A DNA stretch of 64,000 nucleotides from Mantamonas sphyraenae STR306 (Eukaryota > Protista > CRuMs): NCBI GenBank assembly GCA_026936335.1, contig JAPMXV010000042.1:620001-684000 (forward strand). Direction: 5' to 3'. This document shows positions 29,449-42,451 of the stretch, in pieces. The notes under the pieces were generated by a model. The model made no database searches and was not told the DNA's origin. It was given only the letters and a program-made list of their open reading frames with translations. Position 1 is the stretch's first letter, and the number at the start of each line of letters is the position of its first letter. A program made the translations under genes and the position numbers.

Positions 29449-31635
29449 ATGAGTCGCAGGCAACAGACTTTCAGCAGCGGCGGTGTGGGACTGCATGACG
29501 ACAGCCCAGGGGGGATCCGACGGAGCAATCGTCGCAATGTGAGCACCCTTTCGTTGGGAAGCTCAGCCAGTGTGCCGAGGAACTCTTGGAACATCGGCGG
29601 CAGTAGTCGAAATCGATCCTTGTACAGGTCAACAGAGAGCAGCGGGTATGGGGTTGGATCGCAGTACAAGACGAGCAACAGCCATGCGCACCCGAGTATG
29701 GGTGGGACAGGACGCAAGACAAGCCGAGACGGAGTTGTGGAGGAGACCATTGAGCTGAACAGCGGCAGCTCAGCGAAGCGCACCAAGCGCAGCTCGTCAC
29801 GTGGGTCAACCTCGTCGAACTCATCGGCAACGCAGTATGGAACGCACAACATGAACTCTGTGGAGGACAGATTGCGGTGGTACCAAGCGGGAGGCCGAAG
29901 CAGCGCGAGTGGCGGGACAACGGTCGGAAGCGGCAGCGGCAACGGGTACAAAGCATCGTTGGCCCGGGTGACAAATACGATGCAACACATGCAGGGGAGC
30001 ACGGCAGGGCTGGAAAGATCGAGTGGTGACAGCACGGGAGTGAGGGCAAGCAGCAGCCGGAATTTGTACGGGCAACTGAGCGGCGCACGAGAGTCTGTTG
30101 GAAGCCGCGTGGAGCACGGAAACTCGCGATTGCATCGAATGAGTGACCGAGACTCATACGCGAGCGTGAGTGAGCTGGGTGAAAGCGGAGGCGGAGTGCG
30201 GAGCAGATCGGTCGCAAGCAGATCCAGTGAGCCAGATGTGGAGGAAGAGGAGGAGGAAACGATGATGACAGAGAGGGACGGAAGGAGCAACCTGGCGTCG
30301 ACGAAGCATCGATTGTCGTCGTCCTCGCTGTCGTCGTCAGTGTCGTCGGGCAGGGGAAAGGGCACGCGCACACGGTTGGAGGAATACGAGAGCAGCAGCG
30401 GCGGGTCGTCGTCTTCGCCTCGGGGTCTGACCGGCCTGGAGAACTTGGGCAATACTTGCTTCATGAACAGTATTGTCCAGTGTCTCAGCAACACGCGCTT
30501 GCTGTGCAACTACTTTCTCAGCGGAGACTACACCGCGGATCTGAACACACAAGTGAGCACACGTGGGAAGCTGGCCAGCGCGTTTGGCAGTCTTATGGAG
30601 CAGATGTGGCGAAAGGGAAGTGGCGGAAGCAGCAGTAGCGGGCTCTACAGCGGCTCGTCCCGCTTGTACTCAAGCTCCTATTCGTCGTACTCGTCGTACT
30701 CGTCGTACGGAGGGCGCAGCAGCGTGTCACCATCTGCATTTAAGCGTGAGGTGGGCAAGTATGCGTCCCGATTTATGGGCTACGAACAGCAGGATGCCCA
30801 CGAGTTTCTCCGCTTTTTGCTGGACGGCCTTCACACGGATCTGAACCTGGTGCGGCGCAAGATCAAGTATGTGGAACGTACAGACGAAGAAGACGCGGCT
30901 CTGAGCAGCGAGGAGAAGGCAGAGGTGTACTGGGAGCGTCATGTCGAGCGCAACCAGTCGTTTGTGATGGATCTGTTCTGTGGCCAACTGCGCAGTTCTG
31001 TGCAGTGCACAGTGTGCAACACAGTATCAGAGGCGTTTGATCCATTCATGGACCTGTCCGTACCCATTCCCAAGCAGTACCAATCGTCTCGCAGCACCAG
31101 GCCATCGTACGGTGGATACCACTCCCGATTCAGCAGCTACGGCAGCAGCAGCTACGGCAGCTACAGCAGCTATGACGATTCGTCTGTATCTTGTACACTG
31201 ACCGAGTGCCTGGAGGAGTTTACAAAGAGTGAGCTGCTGGACGAGGAGGAAAAGTACTTTTGCTCACGGTGCAAGAAGCGCCAGCGCAGCCGGAAGGCAT
31301 TCTCCATCCGCACGCTGCCGCCGGTCCTTGTCATCCACATCAAGCGCTTTGTGTACAACACATACACTCGCTCCAAGTTGGCCACGAGCGTGGATTTCCC
31401 CACCCGCGGCCTGGATATGTCTGCGTATGCAGACGGCGGCCAAAACGCCGTCTACGATCTCTTTGCTGTCAGCAACCATATCGGGAGCATGGGAGGAGGT
31501 CACTACACAGCCCATTGTATCAACCAGGACGACGGGGCGTGGCACAGCTACAACGACTCGTCCGTGAGCAGCGCCTCAGAGTCGTCGCTCAGCAAATCCA
31601 ACGCCTACGTCCTGTTCTATGCGCTTCGCAAATGA
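29449..31635 (+). CDS. Ubiquitin-specific protease, USP2/USP21-like (peptidase C19); intronless
   Basis: Cys box GLENLGNTCFMNS, QQDAHEFLRFLLDGLH, His box NHIGSMGGGHYTA, NDS...AYVLFY. Confidence 0.93.
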   Translation: MSRRQQTFSSGGVGLHDDSPGGIRRSNRRNVSTLSLGSSASVPRNSWNIGGSSRNRSLYRSTESSGYGVGSQYKTSNSHAHPSMGGTGRKTSRDGVVEETIELNSGSSAKRTKRSSSRGSTSSNSSATQYGTHNMNSVEDRLRWYQAGGRSSASGGTTVGSGSGNGYKASLARVTNTMQHMQGSTAGLERSSGDSTGVRASSSRNLYGQLSGARESVGSRVEHGNSRLHRMSDRDSYASVSELGESGGGVRSRSVASRSSEPDVEEEEEETMMTERDGRSNLASTKHRLSSSSLSSSVSSGRGKGTRTRLEEYESSSGGSSSSPRGLTGLENLGNTCFMNSIVQCLSNTRLLCNYFLSGDYTADLNTQVSTRGKLASAFGSLMEQMWRKGSGGSSSSGLYSGSSRLYSSSYSSYSSYSSYGGRSSVSPSAFKREVGKYASRFMGYEQQDAHEFLRFLLDGLHTDLNLVRRKIKYVERTDEEDAALSSEEKAEVYWERHVERNQSFVMDLFCGQLRSSVQCTVCNTVSEAFDPFMDLSVPIPKQYQSSRSTRPSYGGYHSRFSSYGSSSYGSYSSYDDSSVSCTLTECLEEFTKSELLDEEEKYFCSRCKKRQRSRKAFSIRTLPPVLVIHIKRFVYNTYTRSKLATSVDFPTRGLDMSAYADGGQNAVYDLFAVSNHIGSMGGGHYTAHCINQDDGAWHSYNDSSVSSASESSLSKSNAYVLFYALRK

Positions 31636-31681: not shown

Positions 31682-34600
31682 TCATTCCATGCGCACAATG
31701 CCTTTCTCTGGGAATTGTCGCCAGATGCGAATCTTCTCCGGGGACACGCCGTGCGAATGCTGCAACTCGACATCCAGCGCGTATGGCTGGATATCATTCG
31801 GCAGGTCGATTGCGTCATTGTCTACACTCGTGCCCATGAGTGCGTGCAGACGGAGCAGGTTTGTGTCCTGGGCCTCGTCGTCGTGAGTGCGACGCAGCAG
31901 GAGGCCGATGTTGCCGCCCCAGCCTGCACCGGGACACAGAAAACCAATGCAGTTGAGTTGTCCATGCTCGTTGTCTTCCATGCGATTGAGTTGCAAAGCC
32001 AGGGTGTACGCACGGTGAAGGACGCCATTGGCCGAGTCACCGCGGAAGAGGTGTCGCTTGTCGTGCCACGACTGCATGCCCAGGGCACCTACAAGAAACA
32101 GCCTCTGGAAATCAGACAACAGCACGGCATTGTCCGACTCTGCACATTCTCGAAGCGTGTGTGCGCGGAAAGTGAGCCCTTCTGCCTCTGCGTCGTCGGC
32201 CCAATTGAGCAAGTGTTGCTGCAAACGGGGCCAGTCCAGCTGGGCAACAGAGGAGGAAGCGGTTGTGAGCAACGCACATACTTGTGCAACACGCCAATCC
32301 TCATGTAGCATATACTCTGCCACGTCGAGCATTGGTGTGGTTGCTGTGAGCACGGCAACTTGCGGCGCACTTGTGCCTTGCGCGTACCCCAACAAGCGCA
32401 CGTCAGTTGGGTCTGCACCCACAGCCACGAATGGGATGAAATCTTCACCCTGGGGCTCCGCATGGATCTCCAACGAGGACACATCCACACCATCGGGTAG
32501 CACCATGCATTCCAGAGGCACCTGCGCTCGTTTGACATCCCACTCGGAAACATCCAATGCCAAACGACCGCCCCCCGTGTGTCTCAATAGCGCGAGAGCC
32601 ATGTGGTACTCACGCACGCGCTGGTTGAAGTTTGTGAGCGGGCTGTCTGCTTCACTGTCACTGTGGCTGCTGAGCTGGCGTGTGGAGCCCGTGTCCACGA
32701 TGACGAGGTCGTAGCCAACTTGCTGCAGGTGTGGCGACACGGATGCAAGGAGACTGGGTTCGTGGCCACAGTCGACAAAGGACAGGCGATCTTTCTCGGC
32801 GCAGGCGATAAGCAACGGGTCCATCACACCGGAGGCGACCCCGACCACTTGGTTTTCCACGTCGTGGCACAGTTGAGCCAGCGAAACGGGCTCGTACAGA
32901 AGCGGCGAGTCGCTGGCAATCAGGGAAAGGGTGCTTGTGGCCACAGAAAGCAACAATGCGGCTGAGCTGGACAGACCGGCACCCATGGCCAGGTCGCTGT
33001 CGATGAAAAGATCCAACGATGGCAATTCGACATCTGACAGGCGGTTGCAAACCTCGTTGATCACACCAGCGACGTAGTGGGTCCACACGGGCGCATCGCT
33101 CAGGTCCACTAGGCCCGCATCTGTGTAGGGCATGGTGCACATGCGGGCACCCCTTTGAAGGTTGCGCGAGTACACGCAAAGACGACGCTGGGAAGAAGTG
33201 CGAACAATGCGCACAGCTGTGCACACGCGCTGCGAGACGGCTAGGCCGAACGCACGCATGGACGCCCAGTCTGTGTGTGCGCCTCCACCATTGATGCGGC
33301 CAGCACAACCATACATGCGCTCTGGAGGATCCAATGGGCCATGGATCGATCGGAAACCGGCGCTCAGGCGTTGTGCATCGAGTTGCACCTCTTGATGGGC
33401 GAATTCGTCCACAGCCACATCCATCAGCCTGGACTGCGCCTCCACGTTGTAGCCTGGTCGCCAAGACTCGAGGACAGGGAGCCAGGAGTCACTTGCAAGC
33501 CACGAGAGCATCCATGCGAGTACACGGCGACGCTGTCGAGTAGCATCGTCGTCTGATCCGTGCGCTGATGGCAGCACATCGGCTACAATGGTGTCCACCA
33601 GTTGAATCCAGGATACTTCGGATGCAGTTGTGTGGGCCATGTGGAACACGTGTGGGATGAGCCACTGGTGGAGCAGTTGTTCAGCAGCGTAGGGCTCATG
33701 TGTGCGTTGCAAACGGTTGCTCACTGGAAGGGTGTCCAACACAGCGTGCAACTGAGCCATCCACACGGTGTCGTTGTCCTGTGAGGCCAAGTGGTGTGCC
33801 TCCAGGGAGTGCTCATCCAAACGCACCTGTATGAGCTCTTGTCTGCGTGCGTCCATGCGGTCCATGTCGATCTGCTTGGCCAGCTCGCCAAACGACTGCC
33901 AGTTGTTCACAATGGGAAAGGTGAGGGGCTTTGCACCGTGAAGAGCATCAACACGGTTGGCTCTGCGGTACAAAGGCCATCGGTGGGTGCGCTGGAAGGT
34001 CTGGTTGTGGTCAGAGGTGGTCCCAGCTGAGCTGAGGGTGCACACAAACTCATTTGCAGCCACCAGCAGAGGAGCATGTGCTATGAGATTGCGCTCCTGG
34101 TCTCCACCTTGCTCTGTGAGTCCGTAGGTACGCGAATCAAAGCCCACGACAAGCACCTGGCTGGCCTGACTGATGTGTCCGCCGCCGCCCACAAAACAGC
34201 TTTGGATGGCCACGCATGCATCCGGTGAGGCGGAAGGTTCAATGACGAGCTCCGTATCCTTCTCCAAGTGGATGTACGAGTCGCTGAGCAGTACACAGGC
34301 ATGTGAGTGTGCGTTGGACACCACCAGGCGCCCGCTGCCTGTGATGACCGTGTTGTGGAGCAGGAAAGCGGCTTCGTCCCCGACCTCCAGCTGCACGGTG
34401 TCCGCGACCGTGCTCCCAAAGGTGTGCTGGGACAGAGGAAGCAATCTGGCACGCGTGCGTCCCTCGTTGGTAAATGCACGCATGTACAGCGCCTGCAAAT
34501 AGAGATCAGGCTGGCCCAGGTCGCCGGCAATACACCCTTCGCCAAGGGAGGCCACGTACGTGGTGTACTTGGTCAGTGTGTCAAAGGCGCACTGCCAAAT

Positions 34601-35977
34601 GGCAGTGCCATCGGCTTGCCAAGCTTTCTGGTAGGCGAGCCATTCGTCGTGGTCGGGAAAGTCTGTGGGCGACTTGTCGATGCCGCTGTTCCAGTCGTGT
34701 ACCCACTCTTCACACGGCGTGTGGGGAGCTCCAAACAGGGTGTTTGCGTATCCAAAGGGCAGGGCCTGCCGCACGCTTTGGCCGGGGCTGACCTGCGACT
34801 CGATGGCAGAAAAGGCGTCGTACAGGGCGCGCACCACGTCTTTCTTCAGACCAGCATACATGACGCAGATCAGCACAGATCCCAGCGTGGTCATGGTCAA
34901 CATGATGTATGGGATGGATGGCTTCTCGCGAAAGTCCACCAAGCGCCCGGCGTCGTCAGCAAGAGCGTTGCCTTTGGATGAAAAGGTGAGCAGCTGATCG
35001 GCCAGATACTGCAGCTCAGAGCGCACGACAAGCACACCATCTACAGTAGCACCGTCTCGATCGGCAGCAAAGTCCAGCATGGCCGTGTAGGCCTTGGCAG
35101 AGATGAGGTTTGCAAAGCCGGTCACCTGGCTGGCGACAACCATGCGGTACTTTTCGATGAGATCTTGGGCCTTTTGGGGCATGGGAAGGGTGCAAATGAC
35201 CATGTCTGCATCGGAGGGGAGCTGGTTGAGCGGATTGCCGGCAACGGTGACGCTTTCAGGGACGAGATCGTAGTCCGAGGCGCACAGGATAGCCCACTCT
35301 TTGCCCTGGTTCGGGAACTGCGAGGCAAAGGCAGTGCTGGAAAGCATGGAGACTTCCCACACCAACTCGTCCAGCAGCTTGTACATGCCCTGGTAGCTGA
35401 AGAAGAGGGTCAAGAGGTAGTTGCGTGTCTTGCGTCCTCCATCCTGGGCGAGGAGAGACGAAGCATGTACGAGGAGCAGGGTAAGTGGACAATGTATGAA
35501 TGCGCACATGTCACCCAGCGCATTCGGTGGCTCGTCGTCCCAAACGTACCAGGATAAAGTGGATTGCGTTCTCGTCGCGGGCAACCGCCTTGTCGCTGTC
35601 CAAGCTCTCGCTGTACAGCAGATCACCAATCTTGAACAGGCCAACGAGATCTGCGAGGTGTGCATACCAATGTCCAACAGCAGGGCGTGAGTGTGAGTGC
35701 GTGACTGAGTGGGTTGGCGCGTGGAAGCAGAAGCGCAACCCTCCGACGTACCGTGTGCATACGTGCCTGGCTCCTCGTGGCTGAGGAGAACATGGCAGCC
35801 AGGATACTTGGAGAGGACGTCGGATGCAATGCGGCTGGCGTACATATGACCCGCTTGTGCGCCGGTAAACAGTTTGAGGTTGGTACAGAACAAGCGAGGA
35901 CCCCAGGAGCCATCCACAAGAGCTGAGCGGACAGCATCGCGCAGAGCAAGGTTTTCCGAGGTGGACAGGGCCTGCAT
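31682..35977 (-). CDS. Bifunctional FKP-type sugar-1-phosphate nucleotidyltransferase / GHMP (galactokinase-family) sugar kinase; 2 introns
   Basis: N-terminal half: HFIL|DGGRKTR, ILCASD, PLNQLPSDADMVICTL, LVDFREKPS, then a beta-helix-like stretch. C-terminal half: AGRINGGGAHTDW, WTHYVAGV, MGAGLSSSAA, SGVMDP, FNQRVRE, GAGWGG. Confidence 0.75.
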   Translation of the reverse strand: MQALSTSENLALRDAVRSALVDGSWGPRLFCTNLKLFTGAQAGHMYASRIASDVLSKYPGCHVLLSHEEPGTYAHGTSEGCASASTRQPTQSRTHTHALLLDIGMHTSQISLACSRLVICCTARAWTATRRLPATRTQSTLSWYVWDDEPPNALGDMCAFIHCPLTLLLVHASSLLAQDGGRKTRNYLLTLFFSYQGMYKLLDELVWEVSMLSSTAFASQFPNQGKEWAILCASDYDLVPESVTVAGNPLNQLPSDADMVICTLPMPQKAQDLIEKYRMVVASQVTGFANLISAKAYTAMLDFAADRDGATVDGVLVVRSELQYLADQLLTFSSKGNALADDAGRLVDFREKPSIPYIMLTMTTLGSVLICVMYAGLKKDVVRALYDAFSAIESQVSPGQSVRQALPFGYANTLFGAPHTPCEEWVHDWNSGIDKSPTDFPDHDEWLAYQKAWQADGTAIWQCAFDTLTKYTTYVASLGEGCIAGDLGQPDLYLQALYMRAFTNEGRTRARLLPLSQHTFGSTVADTVQLEVGDEAAFLLHNTVITGSGRLVVSNAHSHACVLLSDSYIHLEKDTELVIEPSASPDACVAIQSCFVGGGGHISQASQVLVVGFDSRTYGLTEQGGDQERNLIAHAPLLVAANEFVCTLSSAGTTSDHNQTFQRTHRWPLYRRANRVDALHGAKPLTFPIVNNWQSFGELAKQIDMDRMDARRQELIQVRLDEHSLEAHHLASQDNDTVWMAQLHAVLDTLPVSNRLQRTHEPYAAEQLLHQWLIPHVFHMAHTTASEVSWIQLVDTIVADVLPSAHGSDDDATRQRRRVLAWMLSWLASDSWLPVLESWRPGYNVEAQSRLMDVAVDEFAHQEVQLDAQRLSAGFRSIHGPLDPPERMYGCAGRINGGGAHTDWASMRAFGLAVSQRVCTAVRIVRTSSQRRLCVYSRNLQRGARMCTMPYTDAGLVDLSDAPVWTHYVAGVINEVCNRLSDVELPSLDLFIDSDLAMGAGLSSSAALLLSVATSTLSLIASDSPLLYEPVSLAQLCHDVENQVVGVASGVMDPLLIACAEKDRLSFVDCGHEPSLLASVSPHLQQVGYDLVIVDTGSTRQLSSHSDSEADSPLTNFNQRVREYHMALALLRHTGGGRLALDVSEWDVKRAQVPLECMVLPDGVDVSSLEIHAEPQGEDFIPFVAVGADPTDVRLLGYAQGTSAPQVAVLTATTPMLDVAEYMLHEDWRVAQVCALLTTASSSVAQLDWPRLQQHLLNWADDAEAEGLTFRAHTLRECAESDNAVLLSDFQRLFLVGALGMQSWHDKRHLFRGDSANGVLHRAYTLALQLNRMEDNEHGQLNCIGFLCPGAGWGGNIGLLLRRTHDDEAQDTNLLRLHALMGTSVDNDAIDLPNDIQPYALDVELQHSHGVSPEKIRIWRQFPEKGIVRME

Positions 35978-36087
35978 GACGTGTAGGTTCGGGCGGGGGG
36001 CGGGCGTGGGTTGTGAGGAGAAAAGGTGGAGGCGGGGGCGAAGAGAGGCGACGTCGCGGCCAACCCTTTCGAGCAGAAGCAAAGAGC

Positions 36088-37678
36088 ATGTCGTCTGGAA
36101 AAAGATTGTCGCCGGAAGAGCCGCTGACTGTGTGTGTGGCTGGAGGTGCGGGTTTCATTGGCTCGCACACGGCATTGAAGTTGAAAGAGGAGGGCCACAC
36201 AGTGATCGTGGCCGACTGGAAGAACAACGAGTTTATGGATCAAAGCGAGTACTGCGACACATTCCACCTTGTGGACCTGCGCACGCTGGAGAACTGCTTG
36301 GAAGTGACCAAAGGTTGCGATTGGGTGCTCAATTTCGCGGCAGACATGGGAGGTAAGGCGTGGAGGCGAGGTGGCGGGTGCGGTGCATTGGCCCACCGCA
36401 AGCAGTTTTCCCCAATTTGGCAGGGCCCTGAGCAGGGCACCCTGTTGCGCGATCGCTGACACAGTCTGTCGGTGTTCTACAGGCATGGGCTTCATCCAGA
36501 GCAACCACAGCGTGATCCTTTACAACAACACGATGATCAGGTGCGTGGTCAAAAAGAGAGTTTACACCTTGCGCGTGAGGCGCTGACACCCGTCGGGTTT
36601 CGCCTTTGCACGCGTCCTCCCACAGCTTCAACCTGGCCGAGGCCGCACGCCAGAACGGCGTGAAGCGCTTCTTTTATGCATCGAGTGCCTGTGTGTATCC
36701 GGAGCACATCCAGATGACAGAAGATCTGCAGGAAGGTGGGTGTGCGCAAAGACGTTTCGGAGCGGTTTTTTCGGTGAGGCTGGTCTCGGGACCTCTCCCG
36801 AGACCAGGGGAAGCATGGGCGTTCTGTGCGGCATCACCGACAACACAGGGCACTGACACGTGATGCGTGCTACATGGGGCCACACTCGGAATCGTGCCTG
36901 CGTAGGCCTGAAGGAAGATATGGCGTGGCCTGCACAGCCGCAGGATGCGTACGGCATTGAAAAGATCTGCTCGGAAGAACTGCTCATGTACTACCACAAG
37001 GACTTCCCTGAGATGGAGACGCGCATCGCACGATTCCACAACATCTACGGCCCGCGCGGCAGCTGGCGAGGTGAGTTTGTTGCGTGAGAAGCGGCTGCTG
37101 CTGTGGTGTTGCTGGTGTCTCGCCTCCTCTCGCTCACGCTCACACGGGTCGTGTACTTGTGTCTTGGTGTCTTGGTGTCTTGGTGTCTGGCAGGCGGTCG
37201 CGAAAAGGCCCCTGCTGCGTTCTGCCGCAAAGTGCTGTCGTCGGAATCGGAGTTTGAGATGTGGGGCTCGGGCAAGCAGACGCGCTCGTTCTGCCTGGTG
37301 GATGACTGCGTGGAGGGCGTGCTGCGTCTCATGCAGTCGGACTACAAGAAGCCTATCAACATCGGTTCGGAAGAGATGGTGAGCATGGACCAAATGGCCA
37401 AGCTGATCATGACTTTCGAGGACAAGCAGCTGGAAATCAAACACATCGACGGGCCCGAGGGTGTCAAAGGTCGCAACAGCAACAACGAACTGATTCGTGA
37501 GGTGTTGGGATGGGAGCCGACCACCAAACTGGAGGATGGTCTGCGCCTGACCTACAACTGGATCAAGGAGCAGATTGAGGCTGAGCAGGCACAGGGTATC
37601 GAGGAGGACTACAGCCACTCTGAGGTGGTTCCTGCACATGCCCCGTCGCAGCTGGGCGAAACCTTGGACAAGGAGTGA
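36088..37678 (+). CDS. GME: GDP-D-mannose 3',5'-epimerase; 4 introns
   Basis: GGAGFIGSH, DWKNNEFM, NFAADMGGMGFIQSNHSVILYNNTMISFN, FFYASSACVYPE, AWPAQPQDAYGIEK, RFHNIYGP, GGREKAPAAFCRK, GPEGVKGRNS. Confidence 0.95.
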
Positions 37679-37737: not shown

Positions 37738-38636
37738 TCAATTTAGTGAATCCAGCACCCGGTGAAACAGTAGCGTGAACATCTCTGTGGTGAAGACGTA
37801 CGTCAGCCCGGTTTCCATGCGCACACGACTCCGTACAAGGCCACAGTGCGTCCTGTGGTGGACTTGGGTCTGCTATGGCTTACCATACACGTTATCGCCG
37901 CTCTTGGCTGACGTTTCAAAATAATAAAACGAGTACTGGTCTGCATACTCCTGGCCCTCCTCTGAGGAGACGGCGCGTTGCTTGGTGTCGCACTTGTTTG
38001 CACAAAGCACGACAACGGGTGGCAGCCCGTATTTGCGAGCCTCGTCCAACCAGTCGTCCAAGGCCTCAAACGTGCGGCGTGACGACACGTCGTATACCAA
38101 GAGTGCCTGTGCGTGTGGGCGAGCGATGGAAATGTGTCTGTGGCGTGAGCGGGCGGGGGTGGAACGAACTGAACACAACGGATTCTTGCGCGCCAAAAAC
38201 CCACCCCCTGTGCCATATCGTAGAACTCGTTGCGCACTTCCAGGTGGTACTCTGAGCCGCTCATGTCCCAAATGTTGACGCGCACGTCCTGGCCGTCGAT
38301 GTCCACCTTGTGCACGCCGTAGTCGACACCAATGGTTGAGTAGTACTTTTCCACAAACTGGGCAAAGGAAGGGTCAGTGGCTGCCAAACTGCTCTTGTAT
38401 GTGTGTGTGTGTGTGCGTGTGTGTGTGTATGTGCTGAATTGTGCGGATTGGTGGTCACGCAACGATACAGAGTCTGGCCGTACCTTTTCTTCTGCAAAGC
38501 GTTTCACAAGGCAGGTCTTGCCGACGCGCACTTGGCCCATGGTAACAATCTTGATGCGGCGTATCTTGGCCACTTCAGCAGAGATCGTCTCCGTGTCCAA
38601 CGAGGGGCGCTGGATGACGTCCTCGGAGCTGCTCAT
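37738..38636 (-). CDS. RJL: RJL-family Ras-like GTPase (DNAJC27/Rbj GTPase domain, no J domain); 3 introns
   Basis: RIKIVTMGQVRVGKTCLVKRF, KYYSTIGVDYGV, NIWDMSG, EVRNEFY, CANKCD, ETSAK. No C-terminal prenylation motif. Confidence 0.85.
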
Positions 38637-38791
38637 CACGTGGCAGAGCAGTTTGAATTGACTTCCACGTCGCACTCGCAATCCATGGCATGTGAAGGGT
38701 GTCTTGGCAAAACCAGTGATTCCTTGTTGTTCTCCGCCTTGAAACCCACATGTGCTGGTGATGGTGCGCATCGCGGGGCAGTCAATTCCAG

Positions 38792-38800
38792 ATGAGCAGC

Positions 38801-38834
<34 letters not shown>

Positions 38835-41800
38835 GTAGTAGCAGCAGCAGCAGCAGCGACGAGGGTACGCGCCAGTCGCTGAAGCGTGAGCAAATGGACG
38901 ACGACGAGGAGATGGATCTGGAGGATGAGGACTTTTTTGCAGAAGAGAAGCGCACAAAGATGCAGCGCACAGAGAGCGCGATGAGCAGTTCCTCGTACTC
39001 GCTGGTTGTCGACGATTACGACGAAGATGAGGATATGGTACGTGTGGCGTGCAATGCATGGTGGTGGAGGTGCGGGAGAACCTTCTTCTGTGCGTCTCAG
39101 AGAGACCGAGAGAGAAAGAAAGTGTGTTGTGTGCCAATCGGCGACTGACGTGCGGCTGATCACTCGTTTCCGTGCTCAGTTTCCCGAGGAGTTTGAACTC
39201 GATGAGTACAAACTGGACGCGCTGGACGCTGTTGCAGACATCGAGAAGCAGTGGAGCAGGCCGCCCCTGCCCGAGCTGGATCCCCTGGACGATACCATCG
39301 GTAGGTTGCGGATCTCGGGAAAAGCGCGCCAAATTGGCGCGTTTTTGGTGGCGTTTTGTTGACTGCGTCACATGTGTTTGCCGTGCCCATGTGTATCCGC
39401 CACGGCTCACATCGTTCCCCCCACACAGTGTTCCAGCAGCTGGATGTTGACTACACAGTGATTCCGCAGCCTGTGCCTGGCATGCCGGGCAAGCAGAAGG
39501 GCAAGGTTCCCGAAGTGCGAATGTACGGCGTGACACAAGAGGGCAACTCGGTGGCTGTGCACGTCCATGGCTTCCTCCCCTACATGTACATAGAGGCACC
39601 GCCCAACTTCTCGGGCGACAAGTGCGCCGAGGTGCGGCAGTTCCTCAATGACCAGCTGCAAAAGCGAGTGCGTGATCGAGACCAGTGCGACGAGTATTGC
39701 CTCGCTGTGGACCTCGTGGAAAAGAGCTCCATCATGGGCTACGACCCAAACGGCACTGTCGTGCCGTTCTTGCGCATCTGCGTCTCGCTGCCCTCACACA
39801 TCCCGACTCTGCGAAAGCTCTGTTCCGACGGCATTGCCATCCCCGGCGCGTCCTATCGCGAGTACCAGACCTACGAGGCCAATCTCCAGTTTGTCCTGCG
39901 CTTCATGATTGACCAAAAGGTGGTGGGTGGTAACTGGATCGAGCTGCCTGCAGGCACCTACAAGGTGCGCTCTGCAAGTCGCAAGGAGCTGCGTTGCCAG
40001 CTGGAGGTTGATGTGGCCTACGACGAGTTTGTCAGCCACGAACCCGTCGGAGATTGGTCGCACCTCGCTCCCATGCGCATCATGAGCTTTGACATCGAGT
40101 GTGCCGGTCGCAAGGGCCACTTTCCTGACGCAAAAATCGACAAGGTCATCCAGATTGCCAATGTGGTGCAGGTGCAAGGCGAATCGGACACCCTCATCAA
40201 GAACGTGATGGTGCTGGGCACCTGTGCAAACATTGTGGGCACAGACGTCCTCACATACTCTTCCGAGGCCGATTTGCTCATGGCCTGGCGGCGCTTCGTG
40301 GAGATCTGCGACCCAGACATCATCACGGGCTACAACATCGTCAACTTTGATCTGCCTTACCTCATTGACCGCGCAGCGGCTCTTGACAGCACGCAGTGCA
40401 GTGGGTTCCCGCTCCTTGGGCGGGTTATGCGCAAGCGATCCGTCATCAAGACTCAGACGTTCTCCTCCAAGGCATACGGCACCCGCGAGAACAAGGACAT
40501 CAACATTGAGGGCCGCGTGCAGTTTGACCTTTTGCAAATCATCAGGCGCGAGCACAAGTTGAGCTCGTACACGCTCAACGCAGTCAGCGCAACCTTTCTC
40601 AACGAGCAGAAGGAGGATGTGCACCATTCCATCATCACAGAGTTGCACGAAGGCAACGACGAAACCCGCCGACGCCTGGCTGTGTACTGCGTGAAAGACG
40701 CCGCGCTTCCGTTGAAGCTGCTCAACAAGCTCATGGCTCTGATCAATCACATCGAGATGGCGCGTGTGACGGGCGTGCCCATTCCGTGGCTTCTGACACG
40801 CGGTCAAACCATCAAGGTCATCTCGCAGCTGTACCGCAAGGCCAACGCCATGGACATGCTCATTCCGGTCGTGCCTTCGCAGGCCAACGGCGACGCAGTC
40901 GCCTACGAAGGCGCCACGGTGATTGAACCTGTGCGTGGCTTCTACCGAGAACCCATTGCCACTCTCGACTTTTCCTCACTGTATCCGTCCATCATGATGG
41001 CCAACAACCTGTGCTACTCGACTCTGATTAGCAAAGCCAAGTCGCGGGAGATGCCCAAGGACGATTTTATTGTCACGCCCACAGGGGACCACTTTGCGCG
41101 CGCGCATGTGCGCAAAGGACTGTTGCCAATCATTTTGGAGGAGCTGCTGAGTGCGCGAAAGAAGGCCAAGGCCGACCTGAAGAAAGAGACGGACAAGTTC
41201 AAGAAGGGGGTGCTCAACGGACGCCAGCTGGCGTTGAAGATCTCAGCCAACTCCGTGTACGGTTTCACGGGTGCCACGATCGGCAAGCTGCCGTGTCTGG
41301 AGATTTCCAGCAGCACGACTGCATTTGGACGCGAGATGATCGAGCTGACCAAGAACACGGTGGAGAAGGAGTATCCCGGGGCCAAGGTCGTCTACGGTGA
41401 CACAGATTCAGTGATGATCAAGTTTGCCAACGCGGAAACGGTGGCCGAGTCGATGGAACTGGGCCATGTGGCCGCGAAGCTGGTGACGGCAAAGTTCCCG
41501 CAGCCGATCCGGTTGGAGTTTGAAAAAGTGTACTACCCGTACCTGCTGATCAACAAGAAACGCTACGCAGGGCTGTACTGGACCAATGCAGACAAGTACG
41601 ATAAGTTGGACACCAAGGGTATCGAAACGGTGCGCCGCGACAACTGTTTGCTTGTGCGCAAGGTGATCAGCACCTGCCTGAACAAGATTCTTATCGAACA
41701 GGATCTGGACGGTGCGATCGAGTACACCAAAGGTCAGATCAGCGACCTGCTGCAGAACAGGCTGGACCTGTCCTACCTGGTGATCACCAAGTCGCTGAGC

Positions 41801-42451
41801 AAGGACAACGAGCAGTACAACGCGTCGCAGGCACACGCAGCGCTGGCTGCACGCATGCGCAAGCGTGACCCGGGCTCTGCACCGCGGGTCGGTGACCGTG
41901 TACCCTACGTCATGATCAAGGCGGGCAAGAATGCAAAGGGAGTGGACAAGAGCGAGGACCCCATCTACGTGCTGGAGAACAATCTGAGCATCGACACGAC
42001 GTACTACCTTGAGAATCAGCTGTCCAAACCGCTGCTGCGCATCTTTTCACCCATCATTGGTGAGCGGGACGCCGAAACGCTGCTGAAGGGGTCGCACACG
42101 TTTTCCAAGCAGAAACAGACACCCACGCATGGGAAGGGCATCATGAAGTTTGCAGTGAAACATCTGACGTGTATCGGGTGCCGTTCCGTGCTCTCGGGAT
42201 CGGAAAAGTCATTGTGCAACAACTGCAAGGAGAACGAAGCATTCTACTTCCGGCGCTCGATGGATCGTCTGGCAGAAACAGAGCAGCTGCATGCCAAGCT
42301 GTGGACTCAGTGCCAGCGCTGCCAGGGCTCTCTGCATCAGGACGTGTTGTGCACGAACAAGGATTGTCCCATTTTCTACTCGCGCAAAAAGGTCCAGAAG
42401 GACATGAAGGAGGCACAGAAGGTGGTGGATCGGTTCAACATCAACTGGTGA
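38792..42451 (+). CDS. POLD1: DNA polymerase delta catalytic subunit; 2 introns
   Basis: SFDIEC, GYNIVNFDLPY, LDFSSLYPSIM, KISANSVYGFTG, YGDTDS, CysA and CysB (CQRCQGSLHQDVLCTNKDCPIFY). Confidence 0.98.

Follow-up and report, generated by a model that had tools for sequence, protein, structure and literature searches.

Two genes that start back to back in the Mantamonas sphyraenae STR306 genome raise the question whether they also work together. They lie in a stretch of 64,000 nucleotides (contig JAPMXV010000042.1, positions 620,001 to 684,000), which we call the window and to which all coordinates refer unless another contig is named. The plus-strand gene encodes GME (GDP-mannose 3,5-epimerase), the enzyme that makes GDP-L-galactose and GDP-L-gulose from GDP-mannose; the minus-strand gene encodes a fusion protein with a pyrophosphorylase-like N-terminal domain and a C-terminal sugar kinase. 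An earlier inspection of the letters and open reading frames (ORFs), here termed the sequence-only reading, had proposed that both form a two-gene module for GDP-L-galactose or a related sugar. We find two real and intact neighbours, a plain GME and a putative bifunctional enzyme of the FKP type, whose adjacency probably reflects the dense packing of this genome and not a conserved module. Gene models were redrawn by eye and then checked on the sequence, and the searches used single exons.

The pair is bounded by the stop codons at 31682-31684 (minus strand) and 37676-37678 (plus strand), and direct reading of the sequence places 110 bp between the fusion-gene ATG at 35977 and the GME ATG at 36088. 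In all of these positions the sequence-only reading proved accurate. Both starts are backed by relatives: the N-terminus of the fusion protein aligns from its first residues with the homologues P0001, P0004, P0006 and P0009, and the first GME exon aligns with Arabidopsis GME residues 25-105. A spacer of 110 bp is by itself ordinary for this genome. The published assembly has 25.06 Mb in 78 contigs, 59% GC and 9,416 genes, which corresponds to a gene density of about 2.7 kb per gene genome-wide (PMC10492846); the GC content of the window is 56-62%, its introns are short and of the GT-AG type, and the tail-to-tail spacers on either side of the pair measure only 46 and 124 bp. Short spacers and divergent pairs of unrelated genes are the rule here; a caveat to the original proposal had already noted that head-to-head pairs of unrelated genes are common in the window. 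That the two genes share a promoter region, as had been claimed, is a fair inference from the distance between them, but distance does not show co-regulation.

If the pair were a unit of the GAL1-GAL10 type, the two genes should be found together elsewhere. On three other eukaryotic contigs that carry homologues of the fusion gene, no GME was found within 6-10 kb: the called genes around P0001, P0005/P0006 and P0009 include no epimerase, and tblastn searches with the GME exons yielded nothing within ±10 kb of the homologues in loci L001-L003. In the Cyanophora gene model, the sequence upstream of the fusion enzyme is a prephenate dehydratase (PDT) and not a GME. Conserved adjacency was thus not seen in the contexts inspected. 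With no nearby GME on three of three homologue contigs, unrelated neighbours and an ordinary spacer, the proposed GDP-L-galactose module is left unsupported, though not refuted.

The identity of the GME gene is clear. It consists of five exons separated by four GT-AG introns of 85-170 nt and encodes 360 amino acids. Exons 1, 3, 4 and 5 are colinear with solved plant GME structures (Table 1), together covering residues 25-371 of the Arabidopsis enzyme (2C59); exon 2, with 18 amino acids, is below the length usable for family searches. Exon 1 has a strong match in the PDB to GME only, with the next families at E ~1e-5, and in the case of exons 3 and 4 no chain other than GME cleared the thresholds applied. 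Against plant GMEs, exon 5 reaches 211-218 bits, with an identity that visual inspection of the alignment suggests to be about 70%, and its best score lies ~160 bits above that of the next family, GDP-fucose synthase (56 bits). The motifs ASSAC, YGIEK and GREK align at Cys145, Tyr174, Lys178 and Lys217 (numbered as in Arabidopsis, with the chain index shifted by 2), residues whose catalytic roles in Arabidopsis GME were reportedly established by Major et al. in 2005. The likeness to characterized GME extends over the full length and is clearly stronger than that to other epimerases of the SDR family. Its sequence identifies the product as a genuine GME of the ordinary plant type, as had been proposed. 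The host differs from that of the plant enzymes in being a heterotrophic CRuMs flagellate, and GME is rare outside plants (PMC3220709).

The fusion gene, which is single-copy in the genome, had been taken for a single ORF of 1431 amino acids. This does not hold: two introns of 101 and 106 nt (35651-35751 and 35444-35549), both GTACGT...AG, divide it into three exons, and the predicted spliced product has 1362 amino acids. The introns and the out-of-frame exon 2 (35444-35751) are free of stop codons when unspliced, and the locus reads as one ORF of 1466 codons; an ORF-based gene model was therefore misled. The junction peptides HD|LVGL and HFIL|DGG match HDFVGL(L) and HFILDGG of homologues, including the intronless P0001. 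Exon 1 aligns from residue 1 with P0001, P0003, P0004, P0006 and P0009, with the conserved blocks TN(I/L)K and LS.E....Y.H, and exon 2 was placed by eye, as MAFFT misplaced this short piece.

The N-terminal ~500 amino acids of the fusion protein match no Pfam or NCBIfam family. In particular PF07959, the FKP family, has no match in the fusion protein (E up to 1), in the whole genome or in any of the 17 family members. However, the family alignment contains four blocks in the order DGGxK(T/S)R, (A/S)SD, FxEK(P/G) and DxGxP, followed by a ladder of strands. When the family profile was compared with the PDB, 13 of 14 weak matches (E 0.019-0.6) were sugar-1-phosphate nucleotidyltransferases, with three motifs colinear, and in the HMMER alignment the family blocks fall on the GGxGTR, EKP and DxGT motifs of ADP-glucose and UDP-glucose pyrophosphorylases. 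The general motifs of this enzyme class, namely the loop, the acidic residue after β4, the lysine in EKP and the aspartate in DxGT, are thus present, with an altered glycine-rich loop in which Lys replaces the second Gly of GGxGTR (DGGxKTR).

Structure prediction points to a closer relative. We modelled residues 1-600 of the homologue P0001 with AF2 on a 17-sequence alignment (pTM 0.66); block means of the pLDDT confidence score range from ~57 to 96 over residues 11-390 and exceed 85 over residues 230-370. Foldseek placed FKP first (E 8.5e-9), ahead of other pyrophosphorylases bearing a β-helix, and VIA-align superposed the pyrophosphorylase part of FKP with a Z-score of 19.8 (277 residues at 3.2 Å), compared to 12.4 for the best protein other than FKP. 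The first ~85 residues of the model are covered only by FKP and ADP-glucose enzymes, whereas the others mostly align from residue ~85 onwards. The P0001 model has the fold of the N-terminal domain of FKP (FKP-NTD), an α/β pyrophosphorylase domain with an extension at its N-terminus, followed by a left-handed β-helix. The β-helix region is predicted with low confidence (pLDDT ~49-63 for homologue residues 420-480; mean 34.9 for the model of the window protein) and aligns with the family block ..V.TG.G.........V.LS.S.I..... Soft support comes from protein-language-model features of the window's own N-terminal domain, for which 29 of 30 named Atlas matches are PF07959. Taken together, the models and matches support a divergent pyrophosphorylase of the FKP (fucose-1-phosphate guanylyltransferase) type that lies beyond recognition by sequence profiles.

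The kinase half points elsewhere. It is matched by Pfam GHMP_kinases_N (E 1.2e-10) and keeps AMGAGLSSSA, PGAGWGG, the catalytic Arg (GR-I-N) and the Asp of GVMDP, as required of a GHMP kinase. Its best relative in the PDB is the galactokinase of L. lactis (1PIE, E 3e-13), and no FKP chain is among its PDB matches at E ≤ 0.001, even though the PDB contains FKP. Outside the family, bacterial galactokinases with ~30% identity come closest. With one narrow exception, the scores remain below curated limits for galactokinase proper: the galactokinase signature PF10509 reached 17.6-18.6 bits in protein scans (cut-off 23.1) and, slightly above the cut-off, 23.6 bits at this locus in a six-frame scan of the genome, and NCBIfam galactokinase models gave at most 86 bits against cut-offs of 226-509. 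The signature itself is modified. All seven of seven family members carry GR(I/L)Nxx(G/A)AHTDW, in which the signature Glu is Ala (GAHTDW versus GEHTDY), whereas GRVNLIGEHTDY with Glu was found in four of five bacterial galactokinases checked, the pattern having missed the fifth. Judged by models and structures, the domain belongs to the galactokinase clade of the GHMP kinases and not to the fucokinase clade. The loss of this sugar-contacting Glu throughout the family speaks against plain D-galactose as the substrate.

The claim of an FKP-type bifunctional enzyme therefore stands as far as the domain layout and the fold of the N-terminal domain are concerned, but the kinase is of the galactokinase and not the fucokinase clade; the evidence supports a hybrid enzyme from a rare family. 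FKP itself is composed of an α/β domain, a β-helix, a helical linker and a GHMP kinase (PMC11982464), and the fusion protein shares this order with FKP/FKGP, the bifunctional L-fucokinase/GDP-L-fucose pyrophosphorylase of Bacteroides fragilis and Arabidopsis, FKP-NTD being by far the best structural match of the homologue model. It differs in lacking a PF07959 sequence match, in its glycine loop DGGxKTR, in its galactokinase-clade kinase with a motif related to the galactose-binding signature and in being ~400 amino acids longer. The kinase would phosphorylate C1 of a free monosaccharide with ATP, and the N-terminal domain would then join the sugar 1-phosphate and a nucleoside triphosphate to a nucleoside diphosphate (NDP)-sugar, a one-protein salvage route as in FKP. 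Because the N-terminal domain is FKP-like, a GDP-linked sugar of the L-fucose, L-galactose or D-arabinose type would be a reasonable guess for the product.

Two other proteins offer comparisons. AFKP80 of Leishmania major is described as an arabino/fucokinase-GDP-sugar pyrophosphorylase that makes GDP-D-arabinopyranose via the sugar 1-phosphate (PMC3347535). It is likewise a bifunctional kinase/pyrophosphorylase of a protist with a GDP-sugar as product, and no Leishmania protein is among the 16 relatives of the fusion family. AFKP80 is a member of the FKP family. Zebrafish GKUP, a glucuronokinase joined to a putative UDP-GlcA pyrophosphorylase, also combines an N-terminal nucleotidyltransferase with a C-terminal GHMP sugar-1-kinase in a eukaryote and is patchily distributed (PMC3938481), but its N-terminal domain is RmlA-like, spans 260 amino acids and has no β-helix, its kinase is of the glucuronokinase clade, and it forms a separate family.

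The kinase leaves room for a different substrate. The fusion protein could activate a sugar of D-galacto configuration, for instance D-galacturonate, L-arabinose, D-fucose or GalNAc, with a UDP- or other NDP-linked product unrelated to the chemistry of GME. We consider this possible, if on the doubtful side. Galactokinases are the nearest relatives of the kinase domain, and the family-wide change of GEHTDY to GAHTDW could fit a sugar altered at C6; plant galacturonokinase is reported, by Yang et al. in 2009, to have Ala at the position of the signature Glu. Against such a substrate speaks the N-terminal domain, which is far closer to GDP-fucose pyrophosphorylase than to UDP-sugar enzymes (Z 19.8 versus ≤12) and whose Atlas matches are to PF07959.

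The fusion protein could also salvage free L-galactose (or L-gulose or L-fucose) to the GDP-sugar and be co-regulated with GME through the 110-bp promoter, which would place the de novo and the salvage supply of GDP-L-galactose for glycans or an ascorbate-type route under joint control. The head-to-head arrangement with 110 bp between the ATGs and the similarity of the N-terminal domain to the GDP-fucose pyrophosphorylase of FKP would suit this arrangement. As 6-hydroxy-L-fucose, L-galactose would also be compatible with FKP-type chemistry. The genome lacks a canonical FKP with PF07959 and contains GDP-mannose 4,6-dehydratase (GMD), NTP_transferase genes, two ALO-domain genes similar to aldonolactone oxidases and, elsewhere, an apparent kinase-epimerase fusion, and with GME rare outside plants it would be notable if two rare sugar genes had come together by chance. 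However, neither the three other homologue contigs nor the gene model of Cyanophora preserve the adjacency, the kinase groups with the D-galactose rather than the L-fucose clade, and short spacers and unrelated divergent pairs abound in this genome. We therefore regard a functional pair as unlikely.

A known parallel is GAL1-GAL10 of yeast, in which a GHMP sugar-1-kinase gene and a gene for an SDR nucleotide-sugar epimerase likewise stand head to head with a shared regulatory region. The co-regulation of GAL1 and GAL10 is proven, and the pair serves the catabolism of D-galactose through UDP-sugars. In Mantamonas the spacer measures only 110 bp, the epimerase acts on a GDP-sugar and co-regulation is hypothetical. 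If the two-gene module were real it would be a rare case of pathway clustering in a eukaryote, for which adjacency is at present the sole argument.

Several points nevertheless weigh against explaining the arrangement by genome compaction and against the enzyme assignment on which this view builds. One would not expect, a priori, that a neighbour belongs to nucleotide-sugar metabolism (at a rough estimate <1% per neighbour), and an FKP-like N-terminal domain fits GDP-L-sugars, which are exactly the products of GME. On contig 49, a GalK-like kinase and an SDR similar to UDP-glucuronate 4-epimerase share one open frame; the combination of a salvage kinase with an NDP-sugar epimerase therefore apparently occurs in this organism. 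Furthermore, the structural model is that of a homologue with 28% identity, the model of the window protein itself, with the low mean pLDDT given above, having been built on a 2-sequence alignment. Both the activity and the substrate of the fusion enzyme are predictions.

A further possibility concerns the N-terminal domain alone. The kinase could be active and the N-terminal domain a non-catalytic or regulatory pseudo-pyrophosphorylase, for example a sensor of NDP-sugars like GMPPA. The change of the glycine-rich loop from GGxGTR to DGGxKTR and the failure of any Pfam model to recognize the domain are compatible with such a role, as are the near inactivity in vitro of the pyrophosphorylase half of DrGKUP (PMC3938481) and the extra nucleotide site near the β-helix of FKP-NTD (PMC11982464). 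Yet eukaryotic and bacterial members alike retain the GTR arginine, the ASD aspartate, the EKP lysine and the DxGxP aspartate, which points to selection on catalysis, and a sugar-1-kinase would be of little use without the pyrophosphorylase step. A pseudo-enzyme thus seems quite improbable.

More remote still is a catabolic route resembling the Leloir pathway on GDP-sugars. Here the fusion enzyme would turn free L-galactose or L-gulose from prey polysaccharides, via the 1-phosphate, into the GDP-sugar, and GME running in reverse would deliver GDP-mannose, so that the carbon would feed mannose and fructose-6-phosphate metabolism. We rate this as highly improbable; if true, the divergent pair would be an analogue of GAL1/GAL7/GAL10 acting on GDP-sugars in a deep-branching eukaryote. 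A pyrophosphorylase run backwards to release L-galactose 1-phosphate as a substitute for VTC2 was rejected as the main explanation, since the fused kinase would create a futile cycle.

Returning to the two genes as independent neighbours, the fusion family proved to be very rare and is undescribed. Among 1.84 billion representatives, an exhaustive search by profile turned up 16 relatives of the N-terminal domain, compared to one in a word-based protein search, and a scan of JGI metagenomes with the family alignment added no further loci (123 pattern matches, none confirmed). The full architecture is also present in P0002 of Gefionella okellyi, in P0003 of Cyanophora paradoxa and in P0001, P0005+P0006 and P0009/P0022 from eukaryote-like metagenome contigs. 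Two of these gene models deserve comment. P0003 (tig00000842_g4841.t1) carries a complete prephenate dehydratase (amino acids 6-183) ahead of the fusion enzyme and probably represents two merged neighbouring genes rather than a true three-domain protein. P0006 (208 amino acids) and P0005 (1257 amino acids) are called 150 bp apart (L002/L003 9222-13774) and correspond, in alignment with the family, to its N-terminus and to the rest of the protein, respectively; a single gene, divided by an intron or by an error in gene calling, is the likely explanation. Distant relatives of the N-terminal domain occur inside giant bacterial multidomain proteins: P0007 (5800 amino acids, from an Omnitrophota metagenome-assembled genome), P0008, P0010, P0012, P0013, P0015 and P0016. 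In P0015 the domain is combined with a mannitol dehydrogenase and a PRK/uridine-kinase-like domain, in P0013 with a β-helix like that of eIF2B-epsilon. The gene contexts of the bacterial relatives P0011 and P0015 gave no hint of a sugar pathway.

Elsewhere in the genome we noted further genes of sugar metabolism. A bona fide GDP-mannose 4,6-dehydratase, whose score of 481 bits exceeds the cut-off, and two genes with an ALO domain (GULO/GLDH-like) were located at C8:318474-319657, C46:22393-23178 and C53:405767-406582; they provide context for GDP-sugar and perhaps ascorbate metabolism. The frame on contig 49 (L011:930-5786, minus strand) is open over 1619 amino acids and has three parts. A GHMP kinase with the GalK signature (amino acids 165-641) is followed by an SDR (731-1074) closest to UDP-glucuronate 4-epimerase-like enzymes, with 5U4Q as the best PDB match (E 9e-53) and MoeE5 next. 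The 539-amino-acid tail has no Pfam or PDB match and is unrelated to the N-terminal domain family of the fusion protein (hhalign probability 0.1). From these matches the frame may be a fusion of a salvage kinase with an epimerase.

The features of the locus are collected in Table 1. Beyond the pair, the open frames of the Ras/Roc-like GTPase and of DNA polymerase delta overlap at their 5′ ends and form a second very tight divergent pair, of genes that are unrelated.

Table 1. Features of the divergent gene pair and of the neighbouring open frames (window coordinates)
Feature	Position	Strand	Evidence and remarks
USP-type deubiquitinase	29449-31635	+	neighbour open frame, 46 bp from the fusion-gene end
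Fusion exon 3, part 4: GHMP kinase of the galactokinase clade, and stop	31682-33373	-	Pfam GHMP_kinases_N; galactokinase structures
Kinase motif III, PGAGWGGN	31910-31933	-	
Kinase motif GVMDP	32816-32830	-	
Kinase motif II, AMGAGLSSSA	32960-32989	-	
Kinase motif GRINGGGAHTDW	33266-33301	-	
Fusion exon 3, part 3: mostly helical linker, poorly conserved	33374-34153	-	low conservation versus P0001; low pLDDT
Fusion exon 3, part 2: predicted left-handed β-helix	34154-34411	-	limits approximate; short β-strand ladder in both AF2 models, low confidence
Fusion exon 3, part 1: core NDP-sugar pyrophosphorylase-like domain	34454-35443	-	motifs conserved across the family; homologue model
Motif DLGQP	34508-34522	-	in exon 3, part 1
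Motif FREKPS	34916-34933	-	in exon 3, part 1
Motif ASDYD	35267-35281	-	in exon 3, part 1
Motif DGGRKTRN	35420-35443	-	in exon 3, part 1
Fusion exon 2, LVGLFKIGDLLYSESLDSDKAVARDENAIHFIL	35550-35650	-	frame differs from the unspliced ORF; GTACGT...AG introns on both sides; junction peptides match homologues
Fusion exon 1: 75 codons + 1 nt, strand-helix-strand extension at the N-terminus of the pyrophosphorylase domain	35752-35977	-	homologue alignment; GTACGT donor
Divergent intergenic spacer between the two ATGs	35978-36087		direct reading; G-rich on the plus strand; putative promoter
GME exon 1: ATG 36088, NAD-binding GxxGxxG region	36088-36352	+	Pfam Epimerase E 3e-11; 2C59 residues 25-105, E 1e-27; GT starts the next intron
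GME exon 2: 18 whole codons, MGFIQSNHSVILYNNTMI	36483-36540	+	sequence reading; GT-AG introns on both sides; fills the 2C59 gap 105-126
GME exon 3: ASSACVYPE with the catalytic Cys	36626-36735	+	PDB matches GME only; 2C59 positions 126-155, E 5e-10
GME exon 4: Tyr/Lys pair of YGxEK	36906-37070	+	PDB matches GME only; 2C59 positions 162-214, E 4e-19
GME exon 5 and stop: Lys of GREK, C-terminal substrate domain	37194-37678	+	8SG0/2C59 positions 216-371, 218 bits, E 5.5e-64
Ras/Roc-like GTPase	37803-39599	-	neighbour open frame, 124 bp from the GME end
DNA polymerase delta catalytic subunit	39356-42451	+	neighbour open frame

For the organism, the presence of GME in a heterotrophic flagellate hints at glycans containing L-galactose or L-gulose, or at a non-plant route to ascorbate. 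For the fusion family, the holders found are a CRuMs flagellate (Mantamonas), a malawimonad (Gefionella), a glaucophyte (Cyanophora) and a few other protists, an odd spread that matters for the question of an ancient eukaryotic origin followed by widespread loss. If it works as proposed, the enzyme would join FKP/AFKP and GKUP as a fourth kind of sugar-salvage enzyme made of one protein, and the combination of an FKP-like pyrophosphorylase unseen by profile libraries with a galactokinase-clade kinase would constitute a new catalyst for unusual NDP-sugars.

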